Sequence record: MT446416.1
DNA: 64,000 nucleotides
Direction: 5' to 3' (one strand)
Within the stretch, counting starts at the first letter, position 1, and each line of letters begins with the position of its first letter. The translations under genes and the position numbers were made by a program. Shown here piece after piece: positions 12,629-38,000 of the stretch. The notes under the pieces were generated by a model. That model made no database searches. It was given only the letters and a program-made list of their open reading frames with translations, and was not told the origin of the DNA.

Positions 12629-13078
12629 TTAGTTATATGAAGTGAATAAATCAATATTTGCATCATCTACACTGATTAATTTACCAGTTGAACTAACAAA
12701 CACAATATTACCACCAGGGGTGAGTTGAACACGCTGGTTTACTGAATATTGATCACTAAGGTTATAATTAGCCCATTCAACTACATAACGCTGTTCAACA
12801 CCATTAGTATCATAAAGATAAACGTGTGTAACATCACGCATTTTTAAACGTTCTAGTAGTGTTGAGTTATCCATGAAATCAGATGGTGTGTCACTACGTA
12901 ATGCGATACCGAACTCACCAATACCAGTACGAATAGTTAGACCGTTGGAAAAACGACTACAAAGAGTTTTCTCGTCAGCAATATGCATCCATAAAACATT
13001 CTTTACTTCAATCTCAATGAACTCACAATTTTCAAAAACTAAACCTACTTTAGAAACCTTACCATTAAATTGCATCAT
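12629..13078 (-). CDS. hypothetical protein
   Basis: ORF track; SD AGGAG. Confidence 0.7.
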   Translation of the reverse strand: MMQFNGKVSKVGLVFENCEFIEIEVKNVLWMHIADEKTLCSRFSNGLTIRTGIGEFGIALRSDTPSDFMDNSTLLERLKMRDVTHVYLYDTNGVEQRYVVEWANYNLSDQYSVNQRVQLTPGGNIVFVSSTGKLISVDDANIDLFTSYN

Positions 13079-13535
13079 AAACTCCTGTTTTTTTGTATTT
13101 TAAAATAAAATCTCTTGCTGCTTTCATAAGTTTAAATGGAATAGCTAATTCTTTAACAGTACTATCCATGAAATGTTCTTCTTCTGTATCATAGAATGTT
13201 GACATGTAATGGTCACAATCGTCAATTCTATCCCAGAAATCGGATGTACTTGGCTTGTTAGCGATGACAGTTATTTGTTTATCAGTTTTAGTATAGGAGG
13301 CATGTATCGTTAATCCAACATCACCCTTTTCAACACGAATTATAAACGAATTATTAGATGTATAACTCAGCCAACAATCTTCACCGAAGTATACAGTACT
13401 GTGTTTCTTCTCAAATGTATTACTGTTTTCAAGTACATCAATGACAATATCAACCGCATTGTCACTTAAAATTTTGACCATATCATCTTCCTCGTAGGTT
13501 TCTGGCAATTTCAAAGATACCATTAATGTTGTCAA
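13065..13535 (-). CDS. FQxST-motif paralogue
   Basis: C-terminal TEEEHFMDSTVKE. Confidence 0.7.
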   Translation of the reverse strand: MTTLMVSLKLPETYEEDDMVKILSDNAVDIVIDVLENSNTFEKKHSTVYFGEDCWLSYTSNNSFIIRVEKGDVGLTIHASYTKTDKQITVIANKPSTSDFWDRIDDCDHYMSTFYDTEEEHFMDSTVKELAIPFKLMKAARDFILKYKKTGVYDAI

Positions 13536-13887
13536 CTGTCAATCCACACATATCGTATACAGTAGATAGCTGAAAGAACATATCTTCATCTATAGTAACA
13601 TGTTCAATCTGCATTTGCAAGAGCACTTCACCAAGAAAATGATCGTATGTTTGTATCTTAAAAGAATCATAATATATATCAATGAAGAATTTTGGCACAC
13701 CATAGAACGAAACGACAAGTACAATGTTGTCAGAAGCTTCACATGGAACACTCAATGTATTTTTAAATGAACGGTATTCAAATGTGTACGGGTCCACGTC
13801 ACATGTATAGAATGAACTACACCCTTCAGAAAATATTACACCATTTTCAATTAGCATAGATAGTGCATGTGGTGGAATTTTCAACAT
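13483..13887 (-). CDS. FQxST-motif paralogue
   Basis: C-terminal DEDMFFQLSTVYD. Confidence 0.7.
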   Translation of the reverse strand: MLKIPPHALSMLIENGVIFSEGCSSFYTCDVDPYTFEYRSFKNTLSVPCEASDNIVLVVSFYGVPKFFIDIYYDSFKIQTYDHFLGEVLLQMQIEHVTIDEDMFFQLSTVYDMCGLTVDNINGIFEIARNLRGR

Positions 13888-13895
13888 TTCAATGT

Positions 13896-14372
13896 TTATC
13901 CTTTATTTTGTTGTACGTTATTATGTAGTACACCACAAATATAAAATAATTTACTTAGATTAGAATAACTTATGTTAGTTAGATCGTATACGAAATTTAG
14001 TTGCATATACATATCTTCAGTTAAATCATACAATGATTCGTCCACATCAATTACAATTTTCTTTGTAGTGTCAATCTCTACTTTATTAGGCCATACATCA
14101 ATAACATAATCATCACCATGTTTTTCAGATATGGAAATGAAAACATTATCGCTTTGTTCTAAAAACTCCATGTATCCGTTAAGAAATGATCCAGTTATTA
14201 TCTCATATTCACCAGAATGATACGTTGTTCTGGACTCAAATTCATTTAAAAATATCAAACGATATGTTTGGTTGATATACTCATCAATTAAACTAATAAC
14301 TTCTTTATTCATTACATTAATCCCCACAAGAAAAAAGGCCGATTCATAATGAATCAGCCTTAAGTATAACAC
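13896..14372 (-). CDS. FQxST-motif paralogue (divergent; true start probably MNKEV)
   Basis: C-terminal TEDMYMQLNFVYD. Confidence 0.65.
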   Translation of the reverse strand: MLYLRLIHYESAFFLVGINVMNKEVISLIDEYINQTYRLIFLNEFESRTTYHSGEYEIITGSFLNGYMEFLEQSDNVFISISEKHGDDYVIDVWPNKVEIDTTKKIVIDVDESLYDLTEDMYMQLNFVYDLTNISYSNLSKLFYICGVLHNNVQQNKG

Positions 14373-14552
14373 AGTAGAAGTAAAAATGTCAACTTCTAAA
14401 ATACAGTATCAAAGAGGAATAAAAAAGATACTGTTAGAGGGTAACGAATATAATGAACCATGAGGGTGATATCATTATACTTTAAAAGAGTGATAGCTTC
14501 TAGACAAAAGGAGGAATTCAGTACCGACTAGAAGCTATCCGGTTAAACGATT

Positions 14553-14837
14553 TCAGTACTGAATGTTTAGTTTAGGATGAGTATGTCCATCTTCGATTTG
14601 CTTTAGAATCGAGTCGCGGATCTCCACTGCACCCTGATAACTGTATTTATCGTTCGGAACTACCCATGTATATTCACCATCAGTGGTTTTAAAATCAATA
14701 CATGGATTGTCTCTGTATTCAGATGCAATGATTGATATAACATGCAATGAATTCAATGAATGATTTGTATAAGGATAATTGTTATTGTCTCGGAACGTGA
14801 ATGTTTTTAGTTCATCAGGTGCAACAATAAATTCCAT
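14553..14837 (-). CDS. hypothetical protein
   Basis: ORF track. Confidence 0.6.
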   Translation of the reverse strand: MEFIVAPDELKTFTFRDNNNYPYTNHSLNSLHVISIIASEYRDNPCIDFKTTDGEYTWVVPNDKYSYQGAVEIRDSILKQIEDGHTHPKLNIQY

Positions 14838-15028
14838 TATTCATCCTCGTACTTCTTGAATGGTGGAACATCTACCTTGAAGTCTTTGCACATCTTAGTT
14901 GCACGAACTTCAGTATTGTTGTGGTAATTTTTATTAAATTCATAAGAAACATAATTACGAATACCAGGTGTATGAATAATAGCAAGAACCAATGTACGAC
15001 CAAATAAGCATAACAAATTCAAAAACAT
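14837..15028 (-). CDS. hypothetical protein
   Basis: ORF track; SD GGAG. Confidence 0.55.
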   Translation of the reverse strand: MFLNLLCLFGRTLVLAIIHTPGIRNYVSYEFNKNYHNNTEVRATKMCKDFKVDVPPFKKYEDE

Positions 15029-15041
15029 ATTAAGCTCCGAG

Positions 15042-15401
15042 TTATGGATTAATCAAACGACACATACCAACTATAACATTTATCTCTTCTAATGTCAAGT
15101 CACCAATGTCATTTATCATTGAGTACTGGAATAATGACTCTTCTGTGTACTCAAAATCACGTACTGCTATAAAAATTGGCTCCTTAGAAACATCTAATGT
15201 TATCTTAGCCATTGTACTATATAAATCAAATTGATACAAAATATTAGGAGAAGTATATGCTATGTATATATTATTACATTCTGATGGATGTACCAGTGTG
15301 AATCCATCATAACATAATATTTTTATGTTAGGATCATCAAAATTACCAGTATAAAGATTCTTACGAACATCTTGCATTATACAAGTTATTAAACTAGTCA
15401 T
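15042..15401 (-). CDS. FQxST-motif paralogue
   Basis: C-terminal TEESLFQYSMIND. Confidence 0.7.
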   Translation of the reverse strand: MTSLITCIMQDVRKNLYTGNFDDPNIKILCYDGFTLVHPSECNNIYIAYTSPNILYQFDLYSTMAKITLDVSKEPIFIAVRDFEYTEESLFQYSMINDIGDLTLEEINVIVGMCRLINP

Positions 15402-15810
15402 TAAACGGATTTAGAACCTCTTCTGGAATTAATCTTTGAACTTTAAGTATAGCATTAATGTCCTCAAATGTCAATCCATTTAGATCGTTTACGAGACAGT
15501 ACTGAAAGAATTTTTCTTCAGTATCTATATCGTCAAAATTCAATTCAATTCTAGTGTCAATATAATCACTATTTACATTAGCAATTCTGATTTTAACTCG
15601 TTCAAAATACACATCAAATGAATAAAAATGATCATTGATTTCATAACCAAGAAAAATATTAAAACATTTACTCAAATCAGTGGTTTCGTTCAAATCGCCA
15701 TCATAGCAAAAAACTCTAACTTCACCAATATCTTCTAATTGTACATCATGCAGTGACCATGCGTTGTTTTTTAATACGTAGTTCACCATTTTAACAATGT
15801 TGTATTTCAT
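15394..15810 (-). CDS. FQxST-motif paralogue
   Basis: C-terminal TEEKFFQYCLVND; visibly similar to 15042-15401 throughout. Confidence 0.7.
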   Translation of the reverse strand: MKYNIVKMVNYVLKNNAWSLHDVQLEDIGEVRVFCYDGDLNETTDLSKCFNIFLGYEINDHFYSFDVYFERVKIRIANVNSDYIDTRIELNFDDIDTEEKFFQYCLVNDLNGLTFEDINAILKVQRLIPEEVLNPFND

Positions 15811-15827
15811 AGTGTACCTTAAAAAAT

Positions 15828-16223
15828 TTATTTACGATTCCTTGCGGAGTTCTTGTTCCTCGCTCTGAATGTTGGTGTCATCGAATGACAATTAGGGCAA
15901 AGGATTTTTAAATTCGGTAGGTCATTATTTGTAGCATCACCATCAATGTGCTCAACTTCTGTCAGTACTGCACCATCAACTGGGTGACGTTTATCCCATC
16001 CACATTCTTCACATGCAGTTCCGCGTGTTTCATGTAGATATCTTCTCACAAATGGGCATAACTGTATGGTAATACCTTTATATCCAGGATGTTCACCGTT
16101 AAGCCATTTATCAACTTTCTGTTGATATTGTAGCTCTTGTTGACATGCAACACTACAATATTTTGTTTGGCCCTTTCGAACCAATTCAATTTTACAACAT
16201 GTACAATAACGTTTTTCTTTCAT
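15828..16223 (-). CDS. HNH endonuclease
   Basis: YCSVACQ Zn finger; CEECGW...EVEHIDGDATNNDLPNLKILCPNCH; start moved to MKEKR (16223) by SD GGAG spacing. Confidence 0.85.
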   Translation of the reverse strand: MKEKRYCTCCKIELVRKGQTKYCSVACQQELQYQQKVDKWLNGEHPGYKGITIQLCPFVRRYLHETRGTACEECGWDKRHPVDGAVLTEVEHIDGDATNNDLPNLKILCPNCHSMTPTFRARNKNSARNRK

Positions 16224-16229
16224 ATAGTT

Positions 16230-16254
16230 CTCCATATATTATGGAGTATTTATA
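16230..16254 (-). promoter_or_regulatory. T4-late-type promoter plus RBS-sequestering hairpin
   Basis: TATAAATA (16247-16254) directly followed by CTCCATA-ATA-TATGGAG hairpin that contains the SD. Confidence 0.6.
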
Positions 16255-16608: not shown

Positions 16609-16733
<125 letters not shown>

Positions 16734-17724: not shown

Positions 17725-18429
17725 TTACAAGCCATGTCTTTTCAAAAATCTAGCAAACACATTTTTGGAAGCACCATAGCTTTCATATATACTAACTTTT
17801 TTCTCACCATTAGTCAAACGTTTTTTTATATCTTCTATGTTATCTTCTAAACGTTTTACGTTTGCAAATTTCTTAGATGGTATGTTATTTTTGGTTCTAT
17901 AATTCAGTACTGAACCTGAACTGATATTCATTATTTTAGCAATTTCAGTATCTAACAAACCTTGGTTAATATATTCTTTTACCTTTTCATAATCAACTGA
18001 TGTTTCACCACCCTTTGTATTTGACGGAGGCTTGACCATTTTTTGTGAACACTCAACACTACAATATTTTGTATATGATTTCACTTTAGTATGTCTACGG
18101 GAAAATTCCGTATTACAACAAGCACATACAAATGAATCATATCGTGCTTGTACTCCATTCTTATGTGTTTTATAACGATGTTCATCAACATGAAGTATTT
18201 GTAAATTAGACAAATCATCATTTGTGAAATCATTATCAATGTGGTCTGCTTCTTCAGACTCAGTTAAATATCTACCTTCTTGTACTGCTAATAGATATCT
18301 GGCATATTGAGTACTGCTTCTATCAGTTGGAGAATTATAAAGTATTACAGTTCTTCTACCTTCAGGGTTTATCTGTATATACCCATTCTTCCAATCATTA
18401 CTATATGGATATTCTAATTTTATTTTCAT
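17725..18429 (-). CDS. free-standing HNH homing endonuclease
   Basis: YARYLLAV..GRYLTESEEADHIDNDFTNDDLSNLQIL; CACC..YCSVEC Zn finger; C-terminal HTH-like region. Confidence 0.85.
   Translation of the reverse strand: MKIKLEYPYSNDWKNGYIQINPEGRRTVILYNSPTDRSSTQYARYLLAVQEGRYLTESEEADHIDNDFTNDDLSNLQILHVDEHRYKTHKNGVQARYDSFVCACCNTEFSRRHTKVKSYTKYCSVECSQKMVKPPSNTKGGETSVDYEKVKEYINQGLLDTEIAKIMNISSGSVLNYRTKNNIPSKKFANVKRLEDNIEDIKKRLTNGEKKVSIYESYGASKNVFARFLKRHGL

Positions 18430-19008: not shown

Positions 19009-19401
<393 letters not shown>

Positions 19402-19789: not shown

Positions 19790-19794
<5 letters not shown>
19765..19794 (-). promoter_or_regulatory. sigma-70-like promoter
   Basis: TTGACT-N17-TATAAT; 23 nt identical to 20184-20206. 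Confidence 0.7.
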
Positions 19795-20168
<374 letters not shown>

Positions 20169-20173
20169 TATAC

Positions 20174-20376
<203 letters not shown>

Positions 20377-20740: not shown

Positions 20741-21279
<539 letters not shown>

Positions 21280-21666: not shown

Positions 21667-21858
21667 TTAACTATTTTTACGTTTTTCTGATTCTGGTACA
21701 GTTTTCATTTCACCAATACATAGTTCCATGATGAGTACACCTTTATCATTATAACGTACTACATCTTCAATGTCAAAATGTCTCGCACTATGAACAACTT
21801 CAATACATGCATCATCGGGATATGATTCCAATAATGCTACAAGTTCTGCTTTTGTCAT
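21667..21858 (-). CDS. hypothetical protein
   Basis: ORF track; MTKAELVALLESYPDDA; downstream of TTGACA-N16-TATAAT at 21889-21916. Confidence 0.65.
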   Translation of the reverse strand: MTKAELVALLESYPDDACIEVVHSARHFDIEDVVRYNDKGVLIMELCIGEMKTVPESEKRKNS

Positions 21859-23281: not shown

Positions 23282-23463
23282 CTTATTTTATCCATAACTG
23301 CTATACTAAAATATTTACCAAAATCATCACAATTGATAATGTTGTTATAGTACTCAATTGGGTTACGCAATGATATATACAATTCAAGCTTAAAATAGTA
23401 TATATCTGCTGCATTTATATTATAGTGTAGATTAAACCACTCATCAAATGTCTTAGGCTGCAT
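23278..23463 (-). CDS. small protein, possibly related to MTHEEW family
   Basis: MQPKTFDEWF N-terminus. Confidence 0.6.
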   Translation of the reverse strand: MQPKTFDEWFNLHYNINAADIYYFKLELYISLRNPIEYYNNIINCDDFGKYFSIAVMDKIR

Positions 23464-23857
23464 TATATTTATCTTTATAAAAATCCATGATTTTAGTCAA
23501 CAGTACTGCAATCGTATAATCTAAATCAGGATAAAGTAAATTGTACTGAAATTCTTCCTCTACACTATAGTTTGTGGTGCAGTACTGATAGTCTTTATAA
23601 CCAATGGAAAAATGGTTAGGATACAATGTACAACGAAATCGATATGCTTCATCTGTCATATAATCATTGTATTCAACACAGAAGTATAGTGATTTGGCAT
23701 TTAATTCAATAAGCTCGACAAAACCATCAGGTAATGAATGGTTATAAATGACTGAATCTTCATTAAACCATTCATAGTATTTTTCCAAAAAATCACTAAT
23801 AGATACATCCAGACTTTGTATAGGTGGAGTAATGATAATTTGAACTTCGTTATTCAT
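23453..23857 (-). CDS. FQxST-motif paralogue (divergent)
   Basis: VEEEFQYNLLY. Confidence 0.65.
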   Translation of the reverse strand: MNNEVQIIITPPIQSLDVSISDFLEKYYEWFNEDSVIYNHSLPDGFVELIELNAKSLYFCVEYNDYMTDEAYRFRCTLYPNHFSIGYKDYQYCTTNYSVEEEFQYNLLYPDLDYTIAVLLTKIMDFYKDKYNAA

Positions 23858-24402
23858 TTCGACCCCTTACTATATTTCACGTATGGGCTATCATACAGAT
23901 CATAACTTTTTTGTGCACGTTCTTTTCTACGTTCATACATGATTCTATCATACTCCTTGGCTTTCGCATTTGCTTCATTATACAATTTTAAAATTAGCAA
24001 AAATGTATCAAGGTCAGGATAGTTTGCTGGATTGATAGTACTCAGCATAAATCGTTCTTCTTCAGTTCTAGCTAAGTCAAACTCGTACTTAATAGTTTTA
24101 TACCCACTCCATTTATATGTATGTGTTACTTTATTAGTAAGTACATTGTATCCAACGAAGTCAGTACTACCATCAAGTACACGAGTAATCATAATAGATG
24201 TACCAATGACAATCTGCACAGAACTCATTTCTGTAGTTTTAAAGTAATATATATTACCACGTCGCAGATTAACTTCTCGTGTCCCAACATGAACATGCTT
24301 AAGAACTTCACTTAATGGTTCTGGTACACCACGAATAGGCATATTAATGCTCCTTTTTAATTCTATACATTTTAACAGCACTGGTTTCCCAAAAGTCACC
24401 AT
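23854..24402 (-). CDS. FQxST-motif paralogue
   Basis: TEEERFMLSTIN; true start probably internal. Confidence 0.65.
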   Translation of the reverse strand: MVTFGKPVLLKCIELKRSINMPIRGVPEPLSEVLKHVHVGTREVNLRRGNIYYFKTTEMSSVQIVIGTSIMITRVLDGSTDFVGYNVLTNKVTHTYKWSGYKTIKYEFDLARTEEERFMLSTINPANYPDLDTFLLILKLYNEANAKAKEYDRIMYERRKERAQKSYDLYDSPYVKYSKGSK

Positions 24403-24610: not shown

Positions 24611-25003
24611 TTACCAGCATGTTTTCATAACTTCTGTGATGTAAATCATTTTATCTTTTAGTTCATAAGGGATGCAAATTTCACCTGGGCTTAACGTTGT
24701 GTTCTTTTGAAACTCATCCTCTTCGGAATCAGCCAGGTAAAATGGGTGCGTCACAAAGTTATCATCAACTGGACGATTATGTGGTTTCATTAATGCATCA
24801 TGATTGACAAAATAATAAGCATCAATATCAGGACGGAAATACAAACAATCAACCTTAATGCACGGGTGTAACCATAAGGACAAAGAATATGTTATTTGGT
24901 TACCAATTTGTCTTGGACCAGATGCAATTGTATTGATGTTATTTTTATCTTGTACCATTTCATAAATGAAATCTATCATTTCACGTAGTTCAGATTCAGT
25001 CAT
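24611..25003 (-). CDS. FQxST-motif paralogue
   Basis: SEEDEFQKNTTL. Confidence 0.65.
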   Translation of the reverse strand: MTESELREMIDFIYEMVQDKNNINTIASGPRQIGNQITYSLSLWLHPCIKVDCLYFRPDIDAYYFVNHDALMKPHNRPVDDNFVTHPFYLADSEEDEFQKNTTLSPGEICIPYELKDKMIYITEVMKTCW

Positions 25004-28897: not shown

Positions 28898-28926
28898 ATT
28901 ATACATACTCCATTTTCATGTGTCAA
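28898..28926 (-). promoter_or_regulatory. consensus sigma-70 promoter
   Basis: TTGACA-N17-TATAAT. Confidence 0.8.
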
Positions 28927-29397: not shown

Positions 29398-29841
29398 TTA
29401 CTCCTTAAAGTAGATATCACGAATTTGCTTAATCATCTCTAACTCTTGAAGTCCTATCATACCGAAGTTTTCTTGCACTGTCAACTGTTGGAAGTACATT
29501 TCCTCTAAATTATTATAAGGAATATCCACTAATGATAAAGGAACACTTTCACCACGGTATAGCAGATCTTCAACGAAAAGTTTTAAAATCATGATAGAAA
29601 ATGAATCTTTTTGGATATGAAATTTGTAAAATGTTTGGTTAGTGCTGAGCATTGTATTTGATGGATTGAACCCCATTTCAACAAATACTGTATCTTTATC
29701 ATTATGTTTGAAATATGTACATCTTGAATTCGCAAGAACTTTAGATTTTGGGAAATAAAAATCACCCATCATCTTCTGTCGTTTCCAGTCCTCATATACA
29801 ACTGGATGCTTTACCTTCTTCAATTGGTGCAGTACTGTCAT
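29398..29841 (-). CDS. FQxST-motif paralogue
   Basis: LEEMYFQQLTVQE. Confidence 0.7.
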   Translation of the reverse strand: MTVLHQLKKVKHPVVYEDWKRQKMMGDFYFPKSKVLANSRCTYFKHNDKDTVFVEMGFNPSNTMLSTNQTFYKFHIQKDSFSIMILKLFVEDLLYRGESVPLSLVDIPYNNLEEMYFQQLTVQENFGMIGLQELEMIKQIRDIYFKE

Positions 29842-30221
29842 AGTTTTTTCCAGTCCAATGAATCGAAATCGATTTGTTCAGGATTATCAACAGCGACAAC
29901 TCGTGCATTATGAAGAGTTTCAAAGTAGCCGTTCCACGGTGTTCGTAATGGAACAGTCACATCGCCAACTTTAACCAAGAATGAATATTCTGGTGATATT
30001 GGGTCAAACCACTCTTTTTGTTTAGCATTTTCTATGATAGTTTCGTGTTCATTTGTATAGCAATTAGATTGCTTCATATAAAACACCCAATGCTCTTTTA
30101 AGCACTGTAAAGCAGCCACTGCTTCCTCTTTAGAAGACCATTGAATATCAATTGTATTAAGAACGTCATAATAATTTTCAGTATCACCTGTAGTGTAATG
30201 TACTTCAATGCAGTATTTCAT
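29838..30221 (-). CDS. hypothetical protein
   Basis: ORF track. Confidence 0.7.
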   Translation of the reverse strand: MKYCIEVHYTTGDTENYYDVLNTIDIQWSSKEEAVAALQCLKEHWVFYMKQSNCYTNEHETIIENAKQKEWFDPISPEYSFLVKVGDVTVPLRTPWNGYFETLHNARVVAVDNPEQIDFDSLDWKKL

Positions 30222-30676
30222 TATTCATCACCTTTTAGTAATTTACAAATTTCAATCATATGATAATAACATGTATTCCAAAATTGCCCATTAGTACTAC
30301 CAACATCATGCACAGTACTTTGTTGGAAAACATATTCATCATTGAACAACTTTTTAATATCATCAATGTAAAATTCTGGTTTTGAATCATTATTGTATTC
30401 AATACTCGTTTCACCATCTGGATCAAGTGAAATTGATGATATATCGTGAATGCCTATCGGATTTGTTGGATAAATTCTCAACGTAAGAGGATAGAAGTCT
30501 GGATCGGTTTCATATGTATATTCGATTATGTAATTACCATCTCCAGTAATTGATTGATATTTAAATGTAGTTTCAATTGAATTTGAGATGTTAAATCCCA
30601 GTCTCTTTATCTCATGTAGATGTAATAATATTTTATGTAAAGTTCCTAAAACATGAATCAAATTATCAATTTTCAT
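30221..30676 (-). CDS. FQxST-motif paralogue
   Basis: NDEYVFQQSTVHD. Confidence 0.7.
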   Translation of the reverse strand: MKIDNLIHVLGTLHKILLHLHEIKRLGFNISNSIETTFKYQSITGDGNYIIEYTYETDPDFYPLTLRIYPTNPIGIHDISSISLDPDGETSIEYNNDSKPEFYIDDIKKLFNDEYVFQQSTVHDVGSTNGQFWNTCYYHMIEICKLLKGDE

Positions 30677-31215
30677 TTACGGTCCTTTGAAAAGTTCAGT
30701 TTAAAAGTTTTACCAAATTCCATTGTAGCTTTACCCAGATTGTTAATATTTTCTTTCAACATTTCTTGCATCTTCCTAATACTTTCATTCCAGGCTTCTT
30801 CTTCTTTGCGGAGGATTGGTCGCAATCGTTCCTGAATATCGTTAAAACGTGTATTGAGTTCAACCAATGATTCATATGTGAAATCTTTCATATCGATGAT
30901 AGTACTACGTTGAAAGAATTCTTCTTCGGATAAATTACTCAAAATGATTTTATCACTACCAATAGATAATGTCAATTCATCATCTTGATTTTTTTTAATT
31001 ACAATACGTACAGGTGATTTTATAGTAATGTGAACATCATGATTATTAAAAGTTTCAGTTTTGTTTGACGTTCTGAATTGTAGTCTTCCGGTTAGTGCGT
31101 GTACTGGCATTGGTTTCTTTTTACCAGTAATAACATCTTCCCACGAATCAAGGATATTATTAATAATTTTAACATAAGGAACTGTCATATATGCACCTAT
31201 GAAAAATCCACGCAT
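30673..31215 (-). CDS. FQxST-motif paralogue
   Basis: SEEEFFQRSTIID. Confidence 0.7.
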   Translation of the reverse strand: MRGFFIGAYMTVPYVKIINNILDSWEDVITGKKKPMPVHALTGRLQFRTSNKTETFNNHDVHITIKSPVRIVIKKNQDDELTLSIGSDKIILSNLSEEEFFQRSTIIDMKDFTYESLVELNTRFNDIQERLRPILRKEEEAWNESIRKMQEMLKENINNLGKATMEFGKTFKLNFSKDRK

Positions 31216-31230
31216 AGCGTGGATCTGTAA

Positions 31231-31761: not shown

Positions 31762-33602
31762 CCATTCCCAAGCATTTTATATGCTTGTGTCTTACTAGAC
31801 ACTTTAAAGAAATCTTCAGGAACGCCCTGTAATTTACAACATTCTACTACACTTAAGTGTCTATAGTCAATATTTCTTTTACCATTCTCTAATAGATATT
31901 GACGATTAATCATTGGGTCACGAAACACCAATTGTCGTCTTGATTTATTAAAGTACTGGTTGCAATCACCACCCTTAAAATAGTTAGCATCTATACAGTA
32001 CGAAGCGGTCCTGTCAGTGTACCAACCATCTTCAATGATATCTTGAAGTTTAGGGGCATTTGATAATGCAGGTGGTATAAAAAGCTTATCAGTACTGCAC
32101 CAGTAGTATCTCTGCCTGAAGTGAGGCGTATAATGCTGGGAATTTATCAGTACTGGTGTCATCTCAAGAACACTATTAATATATTGCTTGAAATCTTCTT
32201 TCATTTTAACATTCTCGAACAGTACTTTCAAGTCTGGATTGAGACTTTTTATGTGCTCATAAATGTCAACCATTGTATGAAACAACATTCCACGCGGATC
32301 ATTTATTCCACCCTGTTTACCTGCAACAGACCAAGATTGACAATTGTGCACAACTATGTTATTTGCGGTATATGTATTGTCAACGGCAACTTCAAAATTA
32401 TATACGGTTTTCCATTCACCTGTCGAAATACTTGTTTTTATACCTTTAACCCATGAATAATTTTCGTCATAAAAAGCTTCCTCTTTTTTGGGTTTGTCTT
32501 TTTTATATGATAAAACATAATACGGTTTTTGGTTTACAATTCGTCCCTCAATAACTTTAGTTTTTTCTGGTTCGGTAAGGCTTATGTTGGAATGTCTTCC
32601 GTAAACGTTCATTATTAATTGTTGGACACCTAATACACAGTCTATTGATGTTGTAGTGAATTTATAACAATTACTATCAATATGACCATCTGCATCAAAA
32701 TATCCATCAAGGAATGCTTTTTGGTTCTGTACACATTCATTGAATAAATCGGGATGAACTTTCTTATTAGATGCACCTTTACCCATTTGTTCACAGAATT
32801 CAACGAGTTCTTTTGAACATATATAAAATTTATATGATGTTCTTTCTTTGACATAATTATATTTCATGTTCATACCTTCAAAACACGAAATCAATTCATC
32901 AAATTCATCATGTGCACAACAGATGAAAACTCTATACTGGTAACTATTCTTTCTATTATTACGCTTTACTTTATAAGTCCATCCGTCACCCATAAAGCGT
33001 CCCATAAAATACCAGAATTTTTCATCTTTTGATGATTTACTAGATTCAATTGATTTAACATTACAAAGAAAATGTTCAGATGTTAATTCGTGTGCCTCAA
33101 CCCATTCAGGTTCAGTGAAGGATCGTTCAGATTGTCTAATTCTGTTATTCCAGCTAGACGACATTTTTCTAGCATAAAATGGATGATTATCAGTGCATTC
33201 AATTGGGATATGACCTTGACCAGTTATAATACGGGTTGGTGCTTTTTTAACACCTGTACTCAATACTGGATGATATTGTCCAGTATGTGTTAGTACCATG
33301 TCACCAACTTGAATGTCTTTAATGTCTTTATGACCTTTATCGGTCATTATCATTGTTCCTTCCGTGAAGCACGGGAACCCTCCCATGAGAAGGTCAATTT
33401 TATCCCACTCAATATCCCATTCTCTCCATTTAGTTACATCACCCAATTGGGTGATATCAGGAAAGTTAGCTTGAGATTCAGCTATTGCGTACTTGTCAAT
33501 TTCGGATGAATAATATTTTTCAACAGGGATACCAGCATCTTTTAATGCCATGTATCCCACACTCATCCCATTAAAAAGAGATAGTACTCGGATAGGTTTC
33601 AT
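31713..33602 (-). CDS. C5 DNA cytosine methyltransferase containing an intein
   Basis: Motif I VLSLFNGM, EID, motif IV GGFP-[intein]-CQSWSVAG, motif VI FENV, motif VIII RQRYYW, motif X LGNGW. Confidence 0.9.
   Translation of the reverse strand: MKPIRVLSLFNGMSVGYMALKDAGIPVEKYYSSEIDKYAIAESQANFPDITQLGDVTKWREWDIEWDKIDLLMGGFPCFTEGTMIMTDKGHKDIKDIQVGDMVLTHTGQYHPVLSTGVKKAPTRIITGQGHIPIECTDNHPFYARKMSSSWNNRIRQSERSFTEPEWVEAHELTSEHFLCNVKSIESSKSSKDEKFWYFMGRFMGDGWTYKVKRNNRKNSYQYRVFICCAHDEFDELISCFEGMNMKYNYVKERTSYKFYICSKELVEFCEQMGKGASNKKVHPDLFNECVQNQKAFLDGYFDADGHIDSNCYKFTTTSIDCVLGVQQLIMNVYGRHSNISLTEPEKTKVIEGRIVNQKPYYVLSYKKDKPKKEEAFYDENYSWVKGIKTSISTGEWKTVYNFEVAVDNTYTANNIVVHNCQSWSVAGKQGGINDPRGMLFHTMVDIYEHIKSLNPDLKVLFENVKMKEDFKQYINSVLEMTPVLINSQHYTPHFRQRYYWCSTDKLFIPPALSNAPKLQDIIEDGWYTDRTASYCIDANYFKGGDCNQYFNKSRRQLVFRDPMINRQYLLENGKRNIDYRHLSVVECCKLQGVPEDFFKVSSKTQAYKMLGNGWTMPVISHLLREIFF
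32343..33371 (-). mobile_element. intein (343 aa) with LAGLIDADG homing endonuclease
   Basis: Starts CFTEGTMIMT, block B ECTDNHPF, YFMGRFMGDG and FLDGYFDADG motifs, ends VYNFEVAVDNTYTANNIVVHN|C. Confidence 0.93.
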
Positions 33603-33654
33603 ATAAAATCCTTTTTATATTGTTAAGGTACTATAATATATTATAGCATCTTAT

Positions 33655-33945
33655 TTAGAAATCTCCCAAACTTTTTTCATCACACCATCGTGATGTGCAG
33701 ATGATTGCAGATGCCAAAATTGAAGCACTTGCTCGGCCTCCACCGAGTAAGTACTGGCTAATGACACCAATCATATTGAAGACTTTATCATACTCAGCAA
33801 GGAGTTCGAAATCCTTCTTCCAACATTGATATTCTTCTTCAGTAACATTAAACTCATCACCAAGTTCATTTAAAATCTTTTTTAGTACTGCACGATGTTC
33901 ACTCATCGGATTCCCCATATCGTTCGTCGTAAAAATCATCATCAC
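33655..33945 (-). CDS. hypothetical protein
   Basis: ORF track; start uncertain. Confidence 0.55.
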   Translation of the reverse strand: MMMIFTTNDMGNPMSEHRAVLKKILNELGDEFNVTEEEYQCWKKDFELLAEYDKVFNMIGVISQYLLGGGRASASILASAIICTSRWCDEKSLGDF

Positions 33946-33984
33946 GGTCCAACGGTTCTTTTGGTTTTTCTGTCATATATTTCC

Positions 33985-34245
33985 TCACATGGTAAATGTA
34001 TTATCACCATCCATATCTTCATCTGTAGCTTCAGCTAAGGTCTTAATCGTCAATAATTCACGCTTCACGTACAACATGAAGACCTTTTCATAATTACCAA
34101 ACATCATCTCAGGTGACATGTAATTCTCCGTTACAATGACGATTGGGCGGCCCTGTGACAGCATACGAAACATAGTACGGTATTTGTCAAAGGTGCGAAA
34201 TTCATCCATGTTCATCATGTGGCGTTTACGAACTACTTTAGTCAT
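33985..34245 (-). CDS. hypothetical protein
   Basis: ORF track. Confidence 0.65.
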   Translation of the reverse strand: MTKVVRKRHMMNMDEFRTFDKYRTMFRMLSQGRPIVIVTENYMSPEMMFGNYEKVFMLYVKRELLTIKTLAEATDEDMDGDNTFTM

Positions 34246-34259
34246 TTTGATACCTTTAG

Positions 34260-34715
34260 TTAATTGAACTCGATTTCTGGATAATGATTATAGAACATCT
34301 CACGTACTGCGTCAAGCTGTTCTTTAAATTTCTCAATGTCATCAAGAGTTAGTACAGTATCACTAACAGTACTCAACTGAAAAAGTGTCTCTTCAGTACT
34401 GTTTTCTGATAAATCAAATGTACATGATGAATCATCTGATATAATATTATCACATATTTCAAATGTGTCAATATGAACATCATTGAGTAGATCACCACTA
34501 TAATCATTATATATGAACACAAAAATGTATGATGGTTTTTTTATCTCAGTTTCTGACTCATAGGCTACCAAATCATATGTAACGTAACATTTAAAGTCAG
34601 GTGAATCGTATTCCATAGATACAATTCCTATATCACGATATTGATTCGTTTCACTGATTAAATCCGGTATAGGTGTAATACCAAGTAAATGAAAAAACTG
34701 TCCTGGATTTAGCAT
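34260..34715 (-). CDS. FQxST-motif paralogue
   Basis: TEETLFQLSTVSD. Confidence 0.7.
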   Translation of the reverse strand: MLNPGQFFHLLGITPIPDLISETNQYRDIGIVSMEYDSPDFKCYVTYDLVAYESETEIKKPSYIFVFIYNDYSGDLLNDVHIDTFEICDNIISDDSSCTFDLSENSTEETLFQLSTVSDTVLTLDDIEKFKEQLDAVREMFYNHYPEIEFN

Positions 34716-35164
34716 TTGATTACCTTCGGGTTTTGCTCTGTGATATCAAACATAGATAGAACGAAATCATTTAGCTTTTCAACACAATTGATTATAGTGC
34801 TTAAATCAGAATAACTAACTGTTAAATTTTTAACAAGAGATTCCTGAAAGTATCCTTCTTCAGTTGAGCAATAACTCACATTTGAGATAGTCTCATAATG
34901 TATATCTTTGCTTGTTTTACATGTTATAATTTCTATTATATCCGATGTTGTGTTATATAATAATATAAATGTTGTTGTTCGTGAATTCTTATTGTAAAAT
35001 GCGAGTTCTGTGCTGTCATATGTTTTCTCAATAAGAACATTGTACTCTTCCGAAAATGATGTGGAAATTCTAATTATCTCTTCTGGATCAGGAACATAAG
35101 AGCCATCAAATTTACAAGACAATGCAATTTCAAAATGATTTTTTATTTCATCAATTTTCATCAT
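34709..35164 (-). CDS. FQxST-motif paralogue
   Basis: TEEGYFQESLVKN. Confidence 0.7.
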   Translation of the reverse strand: MMKIDEIKNHFEIALSCKFDGSYVPDPEEIIRISTSFSEEYNVLIEKTYDSTELAFYNKNSRTTTFILLYNTTSDIIEIITCKTSKDIHYETISNVSYCSTEEGYFQESLVKNLTVSYSDLSTIINCVEKLNDFVLSMFDITEQNPKVIKC

Positions 35165-35556
35165 AGCTCACCATTTAATTTGCTATTTACATATTCTAAT
35201 GCTTTTTTAGCAATGCCAATTTCGGTAACTCCTATTACATTTTTCTCGATTAACGACAATTGAAATAGTTCATCTTCATCAATATCAATACTATGGGTTC
35301 TTGACCAATAATAATTGAAGTCATATGCATATCGTATTGTATTTTCTTTAATATCAAGTACCAATATGACCATACCATCGTGTAGGTATGTCAGTGTTTT
35401 TCCGTATATATTAAAAATTAACCTATCTGGTGTACCCAATGGAAGATGAATTATATTTTGTGTAGTTCCAACAATAACAAAATCATTATCTATATTTTTA
35501 TTCAAGTCACCTAGAATGTCATATATAGTAGTCATGTTAATCTTGACCCTCAGCAT
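35161..35556 (-). CDS. FQxST-motif paralogue
   Basis: DEDELFQLSLIEK. Confidence 0.7.
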   Translation of the reverse strand: MLRVKINMTTIYDILGDLNKNIDNDFVIVGTTQNIIHLPLGTPDRLIFNIYGKTLTYLHDGMVILVLDIKENTIRYAYDFNYYWSRTHSIDIDEDELFQLSLIEKNVIGVTEIGIAKKALEYVNSKLNGEL

Positions 35557-35941
35557 TTCTGATGATTCGCATTACTTCTCTGGATAGGTCGAATACTTTT
35601 TTATAGTACTCAAATGTAACTGAACCAAAATCATTAACAGTACTATCCATGAAGAACGATTCTTCGGTGCAATACACACCTGTAATTGAAACATGCTCTT
35701 GATGGAATTTAGCATCTTTCCAGTAACGGAATTCGAAAATAAATTGCCCGTCATGACCAACCCTACAACACTCGGCACGGTCACTGTCTACACAGCTAAT
35801 CACAATATCCCTCTCGGAGTCATACCAGATATTTCCAATATTTGTTTCAATAACTGCATAATCAATTTTTGTAGAATTGGGAATTAAACCTTTTTTTACC
35901 AGTACTAGACTGGTATTATCAATATCCAGAAAACTTACCAT
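35537..35941 (-). CDS. FQxST-motif paralogue
   Basis: TEESFFMDSTVND. Confidence 0.7.
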   Translation of the reverse strand: MVSFLDIDNTSLVLVKKGLIPNSTKIDYAVIETNIGNIWYDSERDIVISCVDSDRAECCRVGHDGQFIFEFRYWKDAKFHQEHVSITGVYCTEESFFMDSTVNDFGSVTFEYYKKVFDLSREVMRIIRNAEGQD

Positions 35942-35942
35942 A

Positions 35943-36353
35943 TCAACTCCCCACTATTACTGTGTTTTTAATTTCTAACAATTCACTATACATCTTCTTC
36001 AATTGTACAATATCTTCATATAAAATACCACCCATATCATCAATCAAAGAACGTTGAAATAGTGATTCATCTGACTGTATTGTGTCCAAATCAGAAATTT
36101 TCAAAACTGTATCTGGGTTTAGTGTGTTTACAATAAGTTTGTTTGTGTATGGTACGTATGTGATCTTGATATTCATTTCTGAATCAAGGGCATACAACCT
36201 CAAAACTGACAAATCACCACAAAGTTGGATTTTTGGTTCATCAAACTCATCAGACCACCACATAGTACTAGTCATATAATTGACGTGTTGGTTCAAATGT
36301 GATATATCCAAATCGAAATAATATTTTAGTTCATTGTGTAAATCTAAACTCAT
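35943..36353 (-). CDS. FQxST-motif paralogue
   Basis: SDESLFQRSLIDD. Confidence 0.7.
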   Translation of the reverse strand: MSLDLHNELKYYFDLDISHLNQHVNYMTSTMWWSDEFDEPKIQLCGDLSVLRLYALDSEMNIKITYVPYTNKLIVNTLNPDTVLKISDLDTIQSDESLFQRSLIDDMGGILYEDIVQLKKMYSELLEIKNTVIVGS

Positions 36354-36383
36354 AAATTTATCCTCTATGCATCATTATCTTAC

Positions 36384-36412
36384 ATTGTAGGATAAACCCA
36401 CGATAATGTCAA
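36384..36412 (-). promoter_or_regulatory. sigma-70-like promoter
   Basis: TTGACA-N17-TACAAT. Confidence 0.65.
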
Positions 36413-36804
36413 GATGTGAATTGCTTATACCAGTGATACAATTCTTTTAATTCTTCAGTACTGAATAGAACATCTTCAATCGTTGTTTGTTGGAAGTGGT
36501 AATCTTCGTTTAAGTACATTGAAATATTTTTATATACTTTTCGATTACATTTTCCAAGAAACGATGTTCTTTTGGATGTGTATTCAATAAATGTTAACTT
36601 ATCTAATTCTATATCCAATGACAATTTAGTACAGTATTCAGTATCATCTACGTACATAAGTTTATTTGAATAACAATCAACTGTGATATATTCTTTATGT
36701 GAGAATTGATATATACCATTAAATTTTTTACCATTTGTACTTCTGAATTTTTCAAGGTAATAAGATAGTGGTTTAGATATTGTACTACCAATAGTATTAT
36801 TCAT
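36409..36804 (-). CDS. FQxST-motif paralogue
   Basis: NEDYHFQQTTIED. Confidence 0.7.
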   Translation of the reverse strand: MNNTIGSTISKPLSYYLEKFRSTNGKKFNGIYQFSHKEYITVDCYSNKLMYVDDTEYCTKLSLDIELDKLTFIEYTSKRTSFLGKCNRKVYKNISMYLNEDYHFQQTTIEDVLFSTEELKELYHWYKQFTS

Positions 36805-36826
36805 AGAACCTCAAAATTTAGACAAG

Positions 36827-36850
36827 AAAAATGCCCCGAAGATCGGGGCA
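36827..36850 (-). terminator. intrinsic terminator
   Basis: TGCCCCGA-TCT-TCGGGGCA then T5. Confidence 0.75.
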
Positions 36851-36966
36851 GTACGAAAAAGATTTTGTACAAAAAAGGGGAATAATACAATCAAATAAAA
36901 TGATAACGTATCATTATTATGTAAGGGAGGAAAGTAACATGATAATGTTAACCATTGCTGGTATAA

Positions 36967-37518
36967 TTATTTATCATTTAATTCTTTTAATTGAGCTTGT
37001 ATATCACCAGAAAGTTTGCGGATTTTCTTGAAACAGTACACGCTATCATCAAGTTCAAGTTCTAGACCGTGAGTGATTGCATAAAGCATTTCAGCAAGCA
37101 CTAGATCCTGACGCATCCAGTTACCATTCTTATAGGTTGTCATTACACAATACGGACAGTGGCTGTTTCCGGTTTGTTTACCCAGGAATACAGATTGGAT
37201 TGTATCATGCTTGAAACCTACAAAAGATTGGTTGATCTTATTGATTTCAGCTACAACGTCCATTTGTGCACCAGTGTTAATTGCAAACACTTCATCACCG
37301 TTCTCGGTTTTGTTGATGTTTAGTTCAATATCACTACCAAGTTTACGAACAGCCAATGTATAAAGTAGGATTTCATACATATCATAATTAGTTGTTTCGC
37401 CATTTGGTGCAGTTACATCGAGACTAACACCATGCATTTTTACTTCAGTACTGAATCCATCTTTATCTGCTAGAAAATCAGTGATTTGTTCAGTTAGGAT
37501 TTTAATTTGGTCAATCAT
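36967..37518 (-). CDS. hypothetical protein
   Basis: ORF track; SD AAGGA. Confidence 0.75.
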   Translation of the reverse strand: MIDQIKILTEQITDFLADKDGFSTEVKMHGVSLDVTAPNGETTNYDMYEILLYTLAVRKLGSDIELNINKTENGDEVFAINTGAQMDVVAEINKINQSFVGFKHDTIQSVFLGKQTGNSHCPYCVMTTYKNGNWMRQDLVLAEMLYAITHGLELELDDSVYCFKKIRKLSGDIQAQLKELNDK

Positions 37519-37571
37519 TATTCATATCCTTATGTTGGAAAAGCCCCCATTACGGAGGCTTTTTAATCTAA

Positions 37572-38000
37572 TTATAGGGAAGCTTCGTATTCAGCTACAA
37601 TGTCAACCATCTCATTGACAAAGTTGATGTGGTCATGAGTTACTGTGCGGAAATCATAAACCAGTGATTGTTGGAAGAATACGTCTTCAGCCAGATTACC
37701 TTCAAAGTTCAGGTCGATGTTTTCTTCATCGTTGGTCGGAGCAACTTTGATATTTAGTTGATTTTCATCAACAACCAATTTCACAACACAACCCAATGCA
37801 ATCGCCAGTACATAAGCAGGTTTCTTCGCCGCTTCAGAACGGAATGGAGCACGTAGAGCACAAATGGTGCTGCTAATCTCATCATTCTGTTCTTTATATT
37901 TAACGTTAATCATCAGTTCTTCAATTTTGACGCTCTCGATTACACGACCAGTTTCAGCAGCGAAGAAAGAGTGGTTACGGATAGTTTGTTCGATATTCAT
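37572..38000 (-). CDS. FQxST-motif paralogue
   Basis: AEDVFFQQSLVYD. Confidence 0.7.
   Translation of the reverse strand: MNIEQTIRNHSFFAAETGRVIESVKIEELMINVKYKEQNDEISSTICALRAPFRSEAAKKPAYVLAIALGCVVKLVVDENQLNIKVAPTNDEENIDLNFEGNLAEDVFFQQSLVYDFRTVTHDHINFVNEMVDIVAEYEASL

Follow-up and report, generated by a model that had tools for sequence, protein, structure and literature searches.

The 20 short ORFs considered here encode proteins that differ widely over most of their length and share one motif near the C terminus, which raises the question of whether this motif is a constant tag fixed to unrelated variable domains, as an earlier note on this DNA had proposed, or an integral part of one protein family. 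The window analyzed, a stretch of 64,000 nt of sequence record MT446416.1, comes from the 352-kb genome of Escherichia virus TH47, a RaK2-like jumbo phage whose host is E. coli.

Identification of the motif-bearing ORFs

All 20 ORFs were located on the minus strand, at the low coordinates given for them, and each of the motif strings originally quoted was found in them (Table 1). Of the 80 ORFs of 100 aa or more on the minus strand of the window, 14 matched the strict pattern [ED][ED]xx[FY][QM]x[STN]x[VIL], compared with a mean of 0.1 and a maximum of 2 in 1000 residue shuffles; none of the 165 plus-strand ORFs did. A profile built from the C-terminal ∼45 residues scored all 20 ORFs at E values of 1e-10 to 1e-17, the next ORF of the window scoring 0.05. 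The 20 ORFs have one near-terminal motif in common, and its frequency is far above that in shuffled ORFs.

The arrangement in tandem runs also matched the earlier description. Regarding the reported sizes of 118 to 182 aa, the ORFs are present, but four of them (13065..13481, 13896..14312, 23854..24342, and 30673..31188) probably have internal starts, given the lengths of their PHROG and orthologous counterparts, which narrows the range to 118 to 171 aa.

Table 1. Family members and sigma-70 promoter-like sites in the window (all on the minus strand)
Feature	Coordinates (strand)	Length or match	Motif	Remarks
Member	13065..13481 (-)	138 aa	13149-13187 (motif helix)	Longest ORF to 13535; full-length RaK2 reciprocal best hit
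Member	13483..13887 (-)	134 aa	13552-13590	N-terminal part linked to 13896, 15042, 15394
Member	13896..14312 (-)	138 aa	13983-14021	Longest ORF to 14372; variant motif (Y-M-Q)
Promoter-like site	14363..14392 (-)	11/12		∼50 nt upstream of 13896 member
Member	15042..15401 (-)	119 aa	15108-15146	RaK2 orthologue
Member	15394..15810 (-)	138 aa	15484-15522	First one modeled (AF2)
Promoter-like site	15446..15474 (-)	11/12		45 nt upstream of 15042 member, within 15394 gene
Member	19009..19401 (-)	130 aa	19105-19143	
Member	19790..20146 (-)	118 aa	19859-19897	
Promoter-like site	20178..20205 (-)	11/12		32 nt upstream of 19790 member
Member	23453..23857 (-)	134 aa	23528-23566	Motif offset by one residue
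Member	23854..24342 (-)	162 aa	24028-24066	Longest ORF to 24402; basic C-terminal extension; RaK2 orthologue
Member	24611..25003 (-)	130 aa	24689-24727	
Member	29398..29841 (-)	147 aa	29470-29508	RaK2 orthologue aligned at residues 2-145
Member	30221..30676 (-)	151 aa	30305-30343	Second one modeled (AF2)
Member	30673..31188 (-)	171 aa	30892-30930	Longest ORF to 31215; long helical C-terminal extension
Member	34260..34715 (-)	151 aa	34359-34397	
Member	34709..35164 (-)	151 aa	34826-34864	RaK2 orthologue
Member	35161..35556 (-)	131 aa	35242-35280	
Member	35537..35941 (-)	134 aa	35630-35668	
Member	35943..36353 (-)	136 aa	36036-36074	RaK2 orthologue
Promoter-like site	36384..36412 (-)	11/12		31 nt upstream of 35943 member
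Member	36409..36804 (-)	131 aa	36472-36510	
Member	37572..38000 (-)	142 aa	37653-37691	RaK2 orthologue E 1e-38, full length

Size and distribution of the family

The C-terminal profile detected ∼33 further motif ORFs elsewhere in TH47 and 13 in the stretch of Klebsiella phage RaK2 that is syntenic with the window, in both cases independently of the training set; the search of the full genome and its relatives that the earlier note had called for was positive in both phages. With ∼40 more members detected outside the window, the total in TH47 amounts to ∼60, or ∼11% of its genes, with a 33-member block at 50 to 83 kb of the genome, the window representing a second block. In public data, an exhaustive profile search yielded at least 114 clusters (50% identity), whose proteins are, with few exceptions, 110 to 170 aa long and have the motif near residue 100. 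Matches to the strict DNA pattern of the motif were restricted to phage contigs of 345 to 366 kb.

None of the members scanned matched a Pfam-A or NCBIfam family or a PDB sequence above threshold, PHROGs distributes them over many families labeled as of unknown function, and we found no account of the family in the literature and no functional annotation, partner or phenotype for any member. By these sequence comparisons, the 20 ORFs are members of a real, large and undescribed paralogous family present in TH47 and its RaK2-like relatives. The earlier observation is upheld; it understated the case, TH47 having ∼60 members and not just 20.

Origin, orthology and selection

The closest paralogue pairs adjoin each other and align over their full length (E value of 7e-31, coverage of 0.91); coverage is 0.91 to 0.95 in g69128/g69546/g70037. 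Family rank distances are 1 to 3 for the top seven pairs and no more than 2 for five of these, and 19 of the 74 significant pairs fall within two family neighbors, compared with an expected 6.6%. In the window, the 15042 member shows 35% identity to its neighbor 15394 (residues 22 to 117), and 13483 and 13896 align at residues 40 to 127. This adjacency of full-length relatives indicates that the family grew via tandem duplication followed by divergence. In kind, and not as a homology group, it is a tandem-duplication multigene family of a large virus, to judge from its gene order and alignments.

Most pairs showed no pairwise or iterative sequence link in their N-terminal parts. The description of the N-terminal two-thirds as barely alignable consequently holds at the sequence level, but a weak common signal persists: among 153 cases, held-out N-termini scored above their own shuffles 77% of the time (p = 5e-15). 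All the N-termini may have a common origin, but most pairs show no N-terminal sequence homology.

Collinear orthologues were found in phAPEC6 for all 20 members, and full-length, collinear reciprocal best hits in RaK2 for 10 of them. The 35537 member has orthologues in 46 phage records by tblastn, those of RaK2 and K64-1 aligning full length with 28% identity. When the orthologues of TH47 and phAPEC6 were compared, the motif had a dN/dS of 0.09, and the N- and C-terminal parts had values of 0.31 and 0.27, respectively, so that the comparison suggested earlier reveals a strongly constrained motif and a faster-evolving N-terminal part. The dS of the motif (0.73) was not lower than that outside it (0.56 and 0.46), and dN was lowest there. 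Family genes taken as a whole showed a dN/dS of 0.28, versus 0.10 for their neighbors.

Predicted fold and position of the motif

Folds were predicted using AlphaFold2 with the family alignment. In the model of the 15394 member (pLDDT of 80, pTM of 0.72), the motif forms a helix (residues 98 to 107) within the most confident block, preceded without a linker by a strand (84 to 91) and followed by another helix (115 to 126). The predicted order of elements is an N-terminal helix, six strands, the motif helix and a C-terminal helix, all in one compact domain. The 30221 model, of low confidence (pLDDT of 66), showed the identical order, with the motif as helix 113 to 122. BFVD matches to the 15394 model were exclusively family-like proteins, while those to the 30221 model were weak (best E value of 0.011, TM of 0.40). 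BFVD models from CBB, RaK2, GAP32 and Asteriusvirus, at 10 to 20% identity, superpose over ∼130 columns with a TM of 0.5 to 0.63.

The motif sits ∼42 residues from the C terminus. The columns before it, up to position -2, alternate between hydrophobic and polar in a strand-like manner, and 75% of the sequences have T or S at position -1. Conserved polar residues occupy positions 1 (E, 94%), 2 (E, 84%), 6 (Q, 89%) and 8 (S, 84%); position 12 is D in 64% and D, N or E in 86%. The segment following the motif, previously described as an amphipathic-looking helix, is indeed predicted as a helix with i/i+3/i+4 hydrophobic periodicity.

The motif is accordingly predicted to be an integral helix of one common fold and not a detachable tag. 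The idea of a constant tag appended to unrelated variable domains is not supported, given the integral position of this helix, with a strand directly before it, and also the full-length alignment of adjoining paralogues, the superposition of independent BFVD models of relatives (10 to 16% identical) over their whole length and the scores of the held-out N-termini. The earlier note had named, as a finding against its own idea, the assignment of all members to one known fold with the motif as a core element; this is nearly what the models predict, namely one fold, but not a known one.

Purely structural helices rarely keep five polar positions (E, E, Q, S and D) at 64 to 94% across such divergence. 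These five positions leave room for a common binding or oligomerization role.

Promoters, protein properties and virion content

There were 34 near-consensus sigma-70 sites on the coding (minus) strand and none on the plus strand, against 2.2 expected per strand, and five of the sites within 12.5 to 32 kb match at 12 of 12 positions. One half of the TH47 genome is rich in such promoters, and it is there that the family blocks are located. The statement that the genes are often preceded by sigma-70 promoters is correct for the region overall, but not for the genes individually: only 4 of the 20 have a near-consensus site within ∼50 nt of the start, the others being placed in operon-like runs. 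From these sites, we infer early transcription by the host RNA polymerase; a search for a transcriptome of any Asteriusvirus or Alcyoneusvirus yielded none.

The proteins of the family are acidic (median pI of 4.6) and for the most part soluble, 57 of the 60 members being without a membrane-like segment. The orthologues of the window members, gp082c-gp134c, were absent from the 62 virion proteins of the published phAPEC6 proteome, a result that disfavors the packaging-signal and scaffold options formerly considered.

Possible roles of the family

The explanation that we favor, with a probability of about one-half, is that the 20 ORFs form one block of a family of ∼60 single-domain proteins of TH47 and its RaK2-like relatives, generated by tandem duplication and then divergence. 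Judged from their context, the members would be early cytoplasmic host-interaction proteins built on one new scaffold. Each would be a compact alpha/beta domain in which an N-terminal helix and a sheet of six strands are followed by the motif helix and, after a short loop, by an amphipathic helix at the C terminus. The motif would be the central helix, with its threonine or serine and the two glutamates forming the helix start, the phenylalanine, threonine/leucine and valine/isoleucine packing in the core, and the aspartate, often followed by glycine, ending the helix; because its residues start, pack and end this central helix, the motif would stay constant while the sheet and loops drift. 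The host RNA polymerase would transcribe the genes early, the proteins would remain cytoplasmic, and each long-lived paralogue would bind a different host or phage target via its own variable sheet surface, for host takeover or counterdefense, the conserved helix-loop-helix keeping the scaffold folded. The effector-like repertoire envisaged earlier fits the low dN/dS of the motif (0.09, versus 0.31 in the N-terminal part), the promoter-rich region and the absence from the virion.

A considerably less probable reading, and the strongest of the competitors, is a revised docking model, in which the fold is shared and a polar stripe of the conserved helix-loop-helix binds one common partner, either from the phage or from the host (a hub protein, chaperone or protease adaptor), while the variable sheet selects the target. 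Motif positions 1, 8 and 12 do lie on one helix face, with 2 and 6 also polar and conserved, the dN/dS of ∼0.3 in the rest of the protein is well above that of the motif, and the motif persists where all else has diverged beyond recognition. However, its T/S-E-E start and D(-G) end resemble the residue patterns of helix N-caps and C-caps, it is the variable positions 3, 7 and 11 that form the stripe expected to face the solvent, the model is at its most confident in the motif helix, which has no linker before it, and no search provided a candidate partner. We consider it rather unlikely that the conserved C-terminal helix pair is instead an oligomerization module, yielding homo- or hetero-oligomers such as p32-like acidic rings, so that the family would act in combinatorial assemblies. 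The family is acidic, many members are colocated and probably cotranscribed, and the best solved-structure matches were to trimeric acidic p32/gC1qBP, with the identical order of elements, but these matches were not significant (best E value of 0.07, TM of 0.28 to 0.36), and every paralogue is conserved independently.

Two further explanations have little to recommend them. It is highly improbable that the motif serves in processing or targeting, either as a protease cleavage site (E-x-x-aromatic-x-Q followed by S, or the S/T-x-E of some prohead proteases) or as a capsid-targeting signal, even though the phage encodes a prohead protease. The string E-E-x-[FLY]-F-Q-x-S superficially resembles 3C/TEV-type sites, and [ST]-E-E resembles the prohead-protease sites of other large phages, likenesses that serve as a lead only; the prediction for the motif is a helix that is well packed, not an extended accessible segment, the motif lies internally rather than at an end of the protein, and the orthologues are missing from the phAPEC6 virion. 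Reuse across the genes of an element acting at the level of DNA or RNA, for example a promoter, an RNA structure or a site of recombination, could account for a short conserved stretch recurring in many neighboring genes, but its likelihood is close to nil, given that synonymous divergence is not depressed in the motif, nonsynonymous divergence is lowest there and the paralogues differ in the codons used.

Comparison with known systems

An array has been noted in phage 121Q, of the same phage group, with tandem duplication proposed as its origin (2013, PMC3622015). Its most likely counterpart is the 33-member block at 50 to 83 kb of TH47; the papers on the 121Q array devote one sentence each to it and do not define a motif, a family or a fold, nor do they cover the second block, orthology across genera or selection. 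Bacillus phage G contains ∼35 zinc-ribbon genes, a lineage-specific expansion (Iyer et al. 2021, PMC7824862). There too, a jumbo phage genome carries tens of copies of one small domain, but that domain has a recognizable fold and a plausible nucleic-acid-binding role, whereas the TH47 family is without a recognizable domain.

With p32/gC1qBP (MAM33), the top Foldseek PDB match, the family shares an N-terminal helix, an antiparallel sheet, two C-terminal helices and acidity; p32 differs in having seven strands instead of six, and there is no sequence similarity. Membership in the MAM33/p32 fold was rejected, the Foldseek matches not being significant (best E value of 0.07, probability of ≤0.66, TM of 0.28 to 0.36). 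The SUKH/SMI1-KNR4 immunity proteins are small, of the alpha+beta class, and encoded in tandem arrays whose paralogues are very divergent and have diverse partners; they are similar to the TH47 family in size, predicted fold class, arrangement and divergence. Membership in this group was likewise discarded: no SUKH-type Pfam model matched any of the 10 + 106 + 10 proteins scanned, and the group was absent among the fold matches.

A constant signal is combined with variable cargo in those internal proteins of T4 that have a capsid-targeting sequence and in the phiKZ inner-body paralogues; the signals are N-terminal and cleaved, and the proteins are found in the virion. They are the known phage precedent for a constant tag on a variable body. 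The TH47 family, in contrast, has its conserved segment in a predicted internal helix, and the orthologues are missing from the virion proteome.

The MGF families of asfarviruses and the host-range families of poxviruses are tandem sets in which the paralogues have diverged except for one conserved segment; they were amplified by duplication and presumably act on the host. The TH47 family resembles them in these tandem arrays and in the single conserved segment, but there is no homology, the host belongs to another domain of life, and the targets would be cytoplasmic bacterial ones. Furthermore, the MGF and poxvirus families vary between strains, whereas the TH47 paralogues are stably kept across genera. 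One-to-one orthology that is stable across genera is unusual among arms-race genes and speaks against the host-interaction reading.

Extent and distribution of the family

The window corresponds to positions 143726-207725 of MT446416.1, a record without annotation that holds the 352,450-bp genome of Escherichia virus TH47 (genus Asteriusvirus). Its interval 30000-38000 showed 100% identity to TH47 and 82 to 96% identity to 121Q, PBECO4-like phages, phAPEC6, Ecwhy_1, and others. Nearly all the long window ORFs are carried by the minus strand. The 20 small ORFs reported in the earlier note, together with every motif string quoted there, were all present. The claim that their C-terminal motif, (E/D)(E/D)xx(F/Y)(Q/M)x(S/T/N)x(V/I/L)x(D/E), is commoner than in shuffled ORFs was borne out: a strict form of the pattern occurred in 14 of the 80 ORFs on the minus strand that reach 100 aa, compared with a mean of 0.1 and a maximum of 2 in 1,000 residue shuffles, and gave zero matches among the plus-strand ORFs of the window.

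When the C-terminal ∼45 residues were made into a profile, all 20 members were recovered with E values of 1e-10 to 1e-17, the best other window ORF scoring 0.05. The same profile found about 33 further minus-strand ORFs of TH47 outside the window and 13 ORFs in the Klebsiella phage RaK2 region syntenic with the window, none of them in the training set. Genome-wide, a relaxed pattern matched 54 of the 495 TH47 ORFs of at least 90 aa (1.4 in shuffles), all but one of which were small minus-strand ORFs of the family type. Profile and relaxed pattern together yielded 60 members (33 at record positions 50 to 83 kb, 20 in the window, and a few singles), that is, ∼11% of roughly 550 genes. The dense 33-member block includes the very recent tandem duplicates g69128, g69546, g70037, and g70477. 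Some members outside the window are longer (190 to 237 aa), with additional N-terminal sequence, while translation of four window ORFs probably starts further in, so that the true sizes of the window members would be 118 to 171 aa. A second cluster, unrelated to the family, adjoins the large block; its ORFs, about 10 in number and paralogous to each other, are small (median, 85 aa).

When 1.84 billion representative proteins were searched exhaustively with the profile, 114 clusters were returned (E ≤ 0.001), almost all of 110 to 170 aa and with the motif present, and the relatives detected by tblastn belonged to jumbo phages of Escherichia, Salmonella, Klebsiella, and Erwinia. A strict DNA pattern, obtained by back-translating the 13-residue motif of the 34260 member with four variable positions left open, gave seven matches in IMG/VR, all on contigs of 345 to 366 kb with two to nine family ORFs per locus. 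The pattern matched once across 185,579 bacterial and archaeal genomes (596 Gb), inside a 1,856-aa ORF that scored 2.5 bits, and this match was dismissed as chance. The family of about 60 members is real and restricted to one phage clade.

No family match was obtained in a Pfam scan of 126 proteins, an NCBIfam scan of 20 proteins, or a comparison of PDB sequences with a 106-sequence profile; one member outside the window showed a weak HobA-like Pfam match below threshold (E = 0.003). PHROGs spreads the members over many families, all of unknown function. In the published literature neither motif nor family was described, three remarks on paralogues being all that was found. "Nearly 10%" of the RaK2 gene products have been called paralogues (PMC3622015), and 22 ORFs of CBB are listed as such (PMC5259590); the family is absent from the text of a large comparative survey of jumbo phages (PMC7824862). 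We regard it as a true protein family of considerable size that has gone essentially undescribed, an example of the lineage-specific multigene families known from large viruses. Its interest lies in scale and conservation more than in the tag mechanism proposed before.

Locations of family members and neighboring features (window coordinates unless record or locus is stated)
Feature	Location	Strand	Remark
Further members	L002 (MT446416.1 49001-99000), about 4.5-32.4 kb of locus		TH47 outside window; ∼40 members in all, L003 and L006 included
Further members	L003, 10068-10739, 19657-20370, 37840-38412, 43813-44328		TH47 outside window
Further members	L006, record 336.0, 336.7, 351.0 kb		TH47 outside window
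Second paralogous cluster	TH47 record 79.3-85.6 kb (L002, about 30.3-36.6 kb)		Unrelated to family
Near-consensus sigma-70 sites (examples)	16637-16664, 21748-21776, 21889-21916, 27037-27066, 28898-28926	minus	
Abutting or overlapping family genes (stop/start)	13481/13483, 15394-15401, 23854-23857, 30673-30676, 34709-34715, 35161-35164, 35537-35556		
Terminator-like hairpins	14335-14361, 25022-25044, 26072-26093	minus	Ends of some runs
C-5 cytosine DNA methyltransferase	31713-33602	minus	629 aa
Homing-endonuclease-like ORFs	15828-16235, 17725-18429, 20741-21265, 21988-22962	minus	Between family members

The motif as part of one predicted domain

The product of 15394-15810, modeled by AlphaFold2 with a 106-sequence family alignment (pLDDT, 80; pTM, 0.72), was predicted to contain a helix (residues 5 to 14), six strands within residues 23 to 91, the motif helix (98 to 107), a further helix (115 to 126), and a short one (130 to 133), with the highest confidence in the motif block. 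The product of 30221-30676, chosen for its divergence, gave a weaker model (pLDDT, 66; pTM, 0.58) with its elements in the same order: helix 3 to 25, six strands, motif helix 113 to 122, and helix 131 to 148. The proteins are therefore predicted to form one compact domain in which the motif is an integral helix, an anatomy that differs from the constant tag on unrelated domains put forward in the earlier note.

The column pattern points the same way. Together with the models, it leads us to read the motif as a complete short helix, with T/S and two acidic residues at its start, an aromatic and two aliphatic residues directed to the core, and D, often followed by G, at its end; the opening T/S and acidic residues we take, from the general features of helix capping, to be the helix N-cap and first turn. 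Positions 3, 7, and 11 vary freely. The run-in is strand-like (-6, -4, and -2 mostly hydrophobic, -5 polar), and after the motif a short loop is followed by hydrophobic residues at 16, 21, 24, 27, and 31, corresponding to a second helix of amphipathic character. The median start of the motif is residue 99 (5 to 95%, 76 to 129), and its median distance from the C terminus is 42 residues (32 to 65).

Residue shares at motif positions (n = 153 sequences; positions 1, 2, 5, 6, and 10 alone were fixed by the search pattern)
Position	Residues
-1	T 50%, S 25%
1	E 94%
2	E 84%, D 12%
4	hydrophobic 89% (F, L, Y about equal)
5	F 98%
6	Q 89%, M 11%
8	S 84%
9	T 56%, L 35%
10	V 48%, I 36%, L 12%
12	D 64%, N 12%, E 10%
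13	hydrophobic 69%

The predicted fold is without recognizable relative. A Foldseek search against the PDB gave no significant match, the best being p32/gC1qBP (E, 0.07 to 0.5; TM, 0.28 to 0.36). Against BFVD, all matches of the first model were to uncharacterized proteins from its own phage group (Asteriusvirus, RaK2, CBB, and GAP32), over ∼130 aligned columns with 10 to 20% identity and TM up to 0.63; the divergent model gave two weak matches of that group (E, 0.011 and 0.025; TM, 0.40).

Descent of the N-terminal parts

That the N-terminal parts are barely alignable held at the level of sequence, where they appear nearly unrelated. When they were cut before the motif, phmmer linked them only to their own orthologues, plus the pair 15042/15394, and jackhmmer, which drew in no decoys, joined only 13483, 13896, 15042, and 15394 plus a single member from the other block. 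However, three results favor common descent. The closest paralogues are neighbors, with alignments over 90% of their length that grade continuously down to motif-only similarity. In 77% of the 153 cases of a group-wise cross-validation, the held-out N terminus outscored its own shuffles (mean gain, 2.6 bits; Wilcoxon P = 5e-15). Finally, both models share one order of predicted elements. The family has grown by tandem duplication.

Age and selection

All 20 window members have orthologues in phAPEC6, in unchanged order. In RaK2, which belongs to a different genus, full-length, collinear reciprocal best hits were found for 10 of the 20, so these paralogues are older than that genus split, and conservation extends specifically to their N-terminal parts. 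The RaK2 region 143844-184257 is collinear with the window, sharing topoisomerase, clamp loader, TerB-like protein, metallopeptidase, and methyltransferase.

The comparison of dN/dS between TH47 and phAPEC6 set the motif apart: the ratio was only 0.09 across its 14 residues, against 0.31 in the parts N-terminal to it and 0.27 in those C-terminal to it. Since dS was not reduced in the motif (0.73), the constraint acts on the protein, and a DNA-level repeat was rejected. Over the whole family dN/dS was 0.28, with a median identity of 74.5%, versus 0.10 and about 88% for 52 neighboring nonfamily genes, a nonsynonymous evolution ∼3 times faster. One helix is under strong protein-level constraint, while the rest evolves faster. 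The strong constraint on the helix, the faster evolution of the sheet, and a stable one-to-one orthology older than the genera point to many distinct, nonredundant activities, not to recent redundancy.

Transcription and protein properties

Near-consensus sigma-70 sites (at most one mismatch to TTGACA-N16-18-TATAAT) numbered 34 on the minus strand of the window and 0 on the plus strand, with 2.2 expected per strand; several matched at 12 of 12 positions. Genome-wide, such sites occupy record positions 0 to 225 kb, and both family blocks lie inside this range. Looser promoter-like sites showed no enrichment in total count. The 34 coding-strand sites would imply dense transcription of that genome half by the host polymerase. 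The statement that the genes often stand behind such promoters is true of the region taken together, with only four members having a site within ∼50 nt. Many genes abut or overlap by 4 to 20 nt, which suggests operon-like runs, and the stop/start overlaps suggest that translation may be coupled inside them. Some runs end, on the coding strand, in hairpins followed by T-runs; between 12.5 and 32 kb there were 15 such terminator-like structures, compared with 6.4 expected. Replication genes (topoisomerase II, clamp loader, and a DNA polymerase fragment) lie upstream of the family in the sense of transcription.

The family proteins are acidic (median pI, 4.6; 70% below 5, versus 30% of the background), and 57 of the 60 lack a membrane-like segment. 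A place in the virion, one of the possibilities raised earlier, found no support: the published phAPEC6 virion proteome lists 62 proteins (PMC7247149, Table 1), and the orthologues gp082c-gp134c are all missing from it.

Possible roles

We infer that the genes are expressed early and that the proteins are cytoplasmic and act, through the variable sheet, on diverse host or phage targets. A further-reaching reading, with a probability of about 0.25, is that roughly a tenth of the genes of RaK2-like jumbo phages encode some 60 early proteins, conserved across genera, on one previously unseen scaffold of a helix, a six-stranded sheet, and two helices, in which the near-invariant helix would turn a polar stripe toward a single shared partner and the sheet of each paralogue would take a different host target. 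If this is true, the family would correspond, in a bacterial virus, to the multigene families known from large eukaryotic DNA viruses, and would add a major, unexplored level to host takeover.

Taken as an explanation of its own, binding of one common partner by the conserved polar face of the motif helix is doubtful, and oligomerization through the helix pair appears quite improbable. An enzymatic role, with the E, E, Q, S, and D residues as active site, was rejected, given that the conserved residues all lie on one short helix and the N-terminal part is without conservation. Like the enzymatic and DNA-level readings, those of a cleavage site or a packaging signal are unlikely.

More than 80% of the genes in these 350-kb phages are without known function; as one family accounts for ∼11% of them, working out this single scaffold would give an annotation to some 60 genes in each genome. 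The family reaches at least four phage genera, infecting Escherichia, Salmonella, Klebsiella, Erwinia/Pectobacterium, and Cronobacter, and provides a set of small, soluble proteins for structural and expression work on host management by jumbo phages without a nucleus-like shell. Its profile fills a gap in curated databases (Pfam and NCBIfam).

Probable mobile elements among the family genes

Three of the four homing-endonuclease-like ORFs carry HNH, HNH_3, and/or NUMOD4 Pfam domains; the one at 17725-18429 had no Pfam match, its likeness being by eye only. All four look like mobile insertions, as the collinear phAPEC6 stretch holds no annotated CDS of comparable size. The methyltransferase contains a Hint plus LAGLIDADG intein-like insertion at about residues 77 to 420, which seems specific to TH47, since the phAPEC6 homologue gp123c has only 286 aa and close relatives align with this stretch in two pieces. 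In the collinear RaK2 region, tRNA genes and an HNH endonuclease are interspersed with family members.
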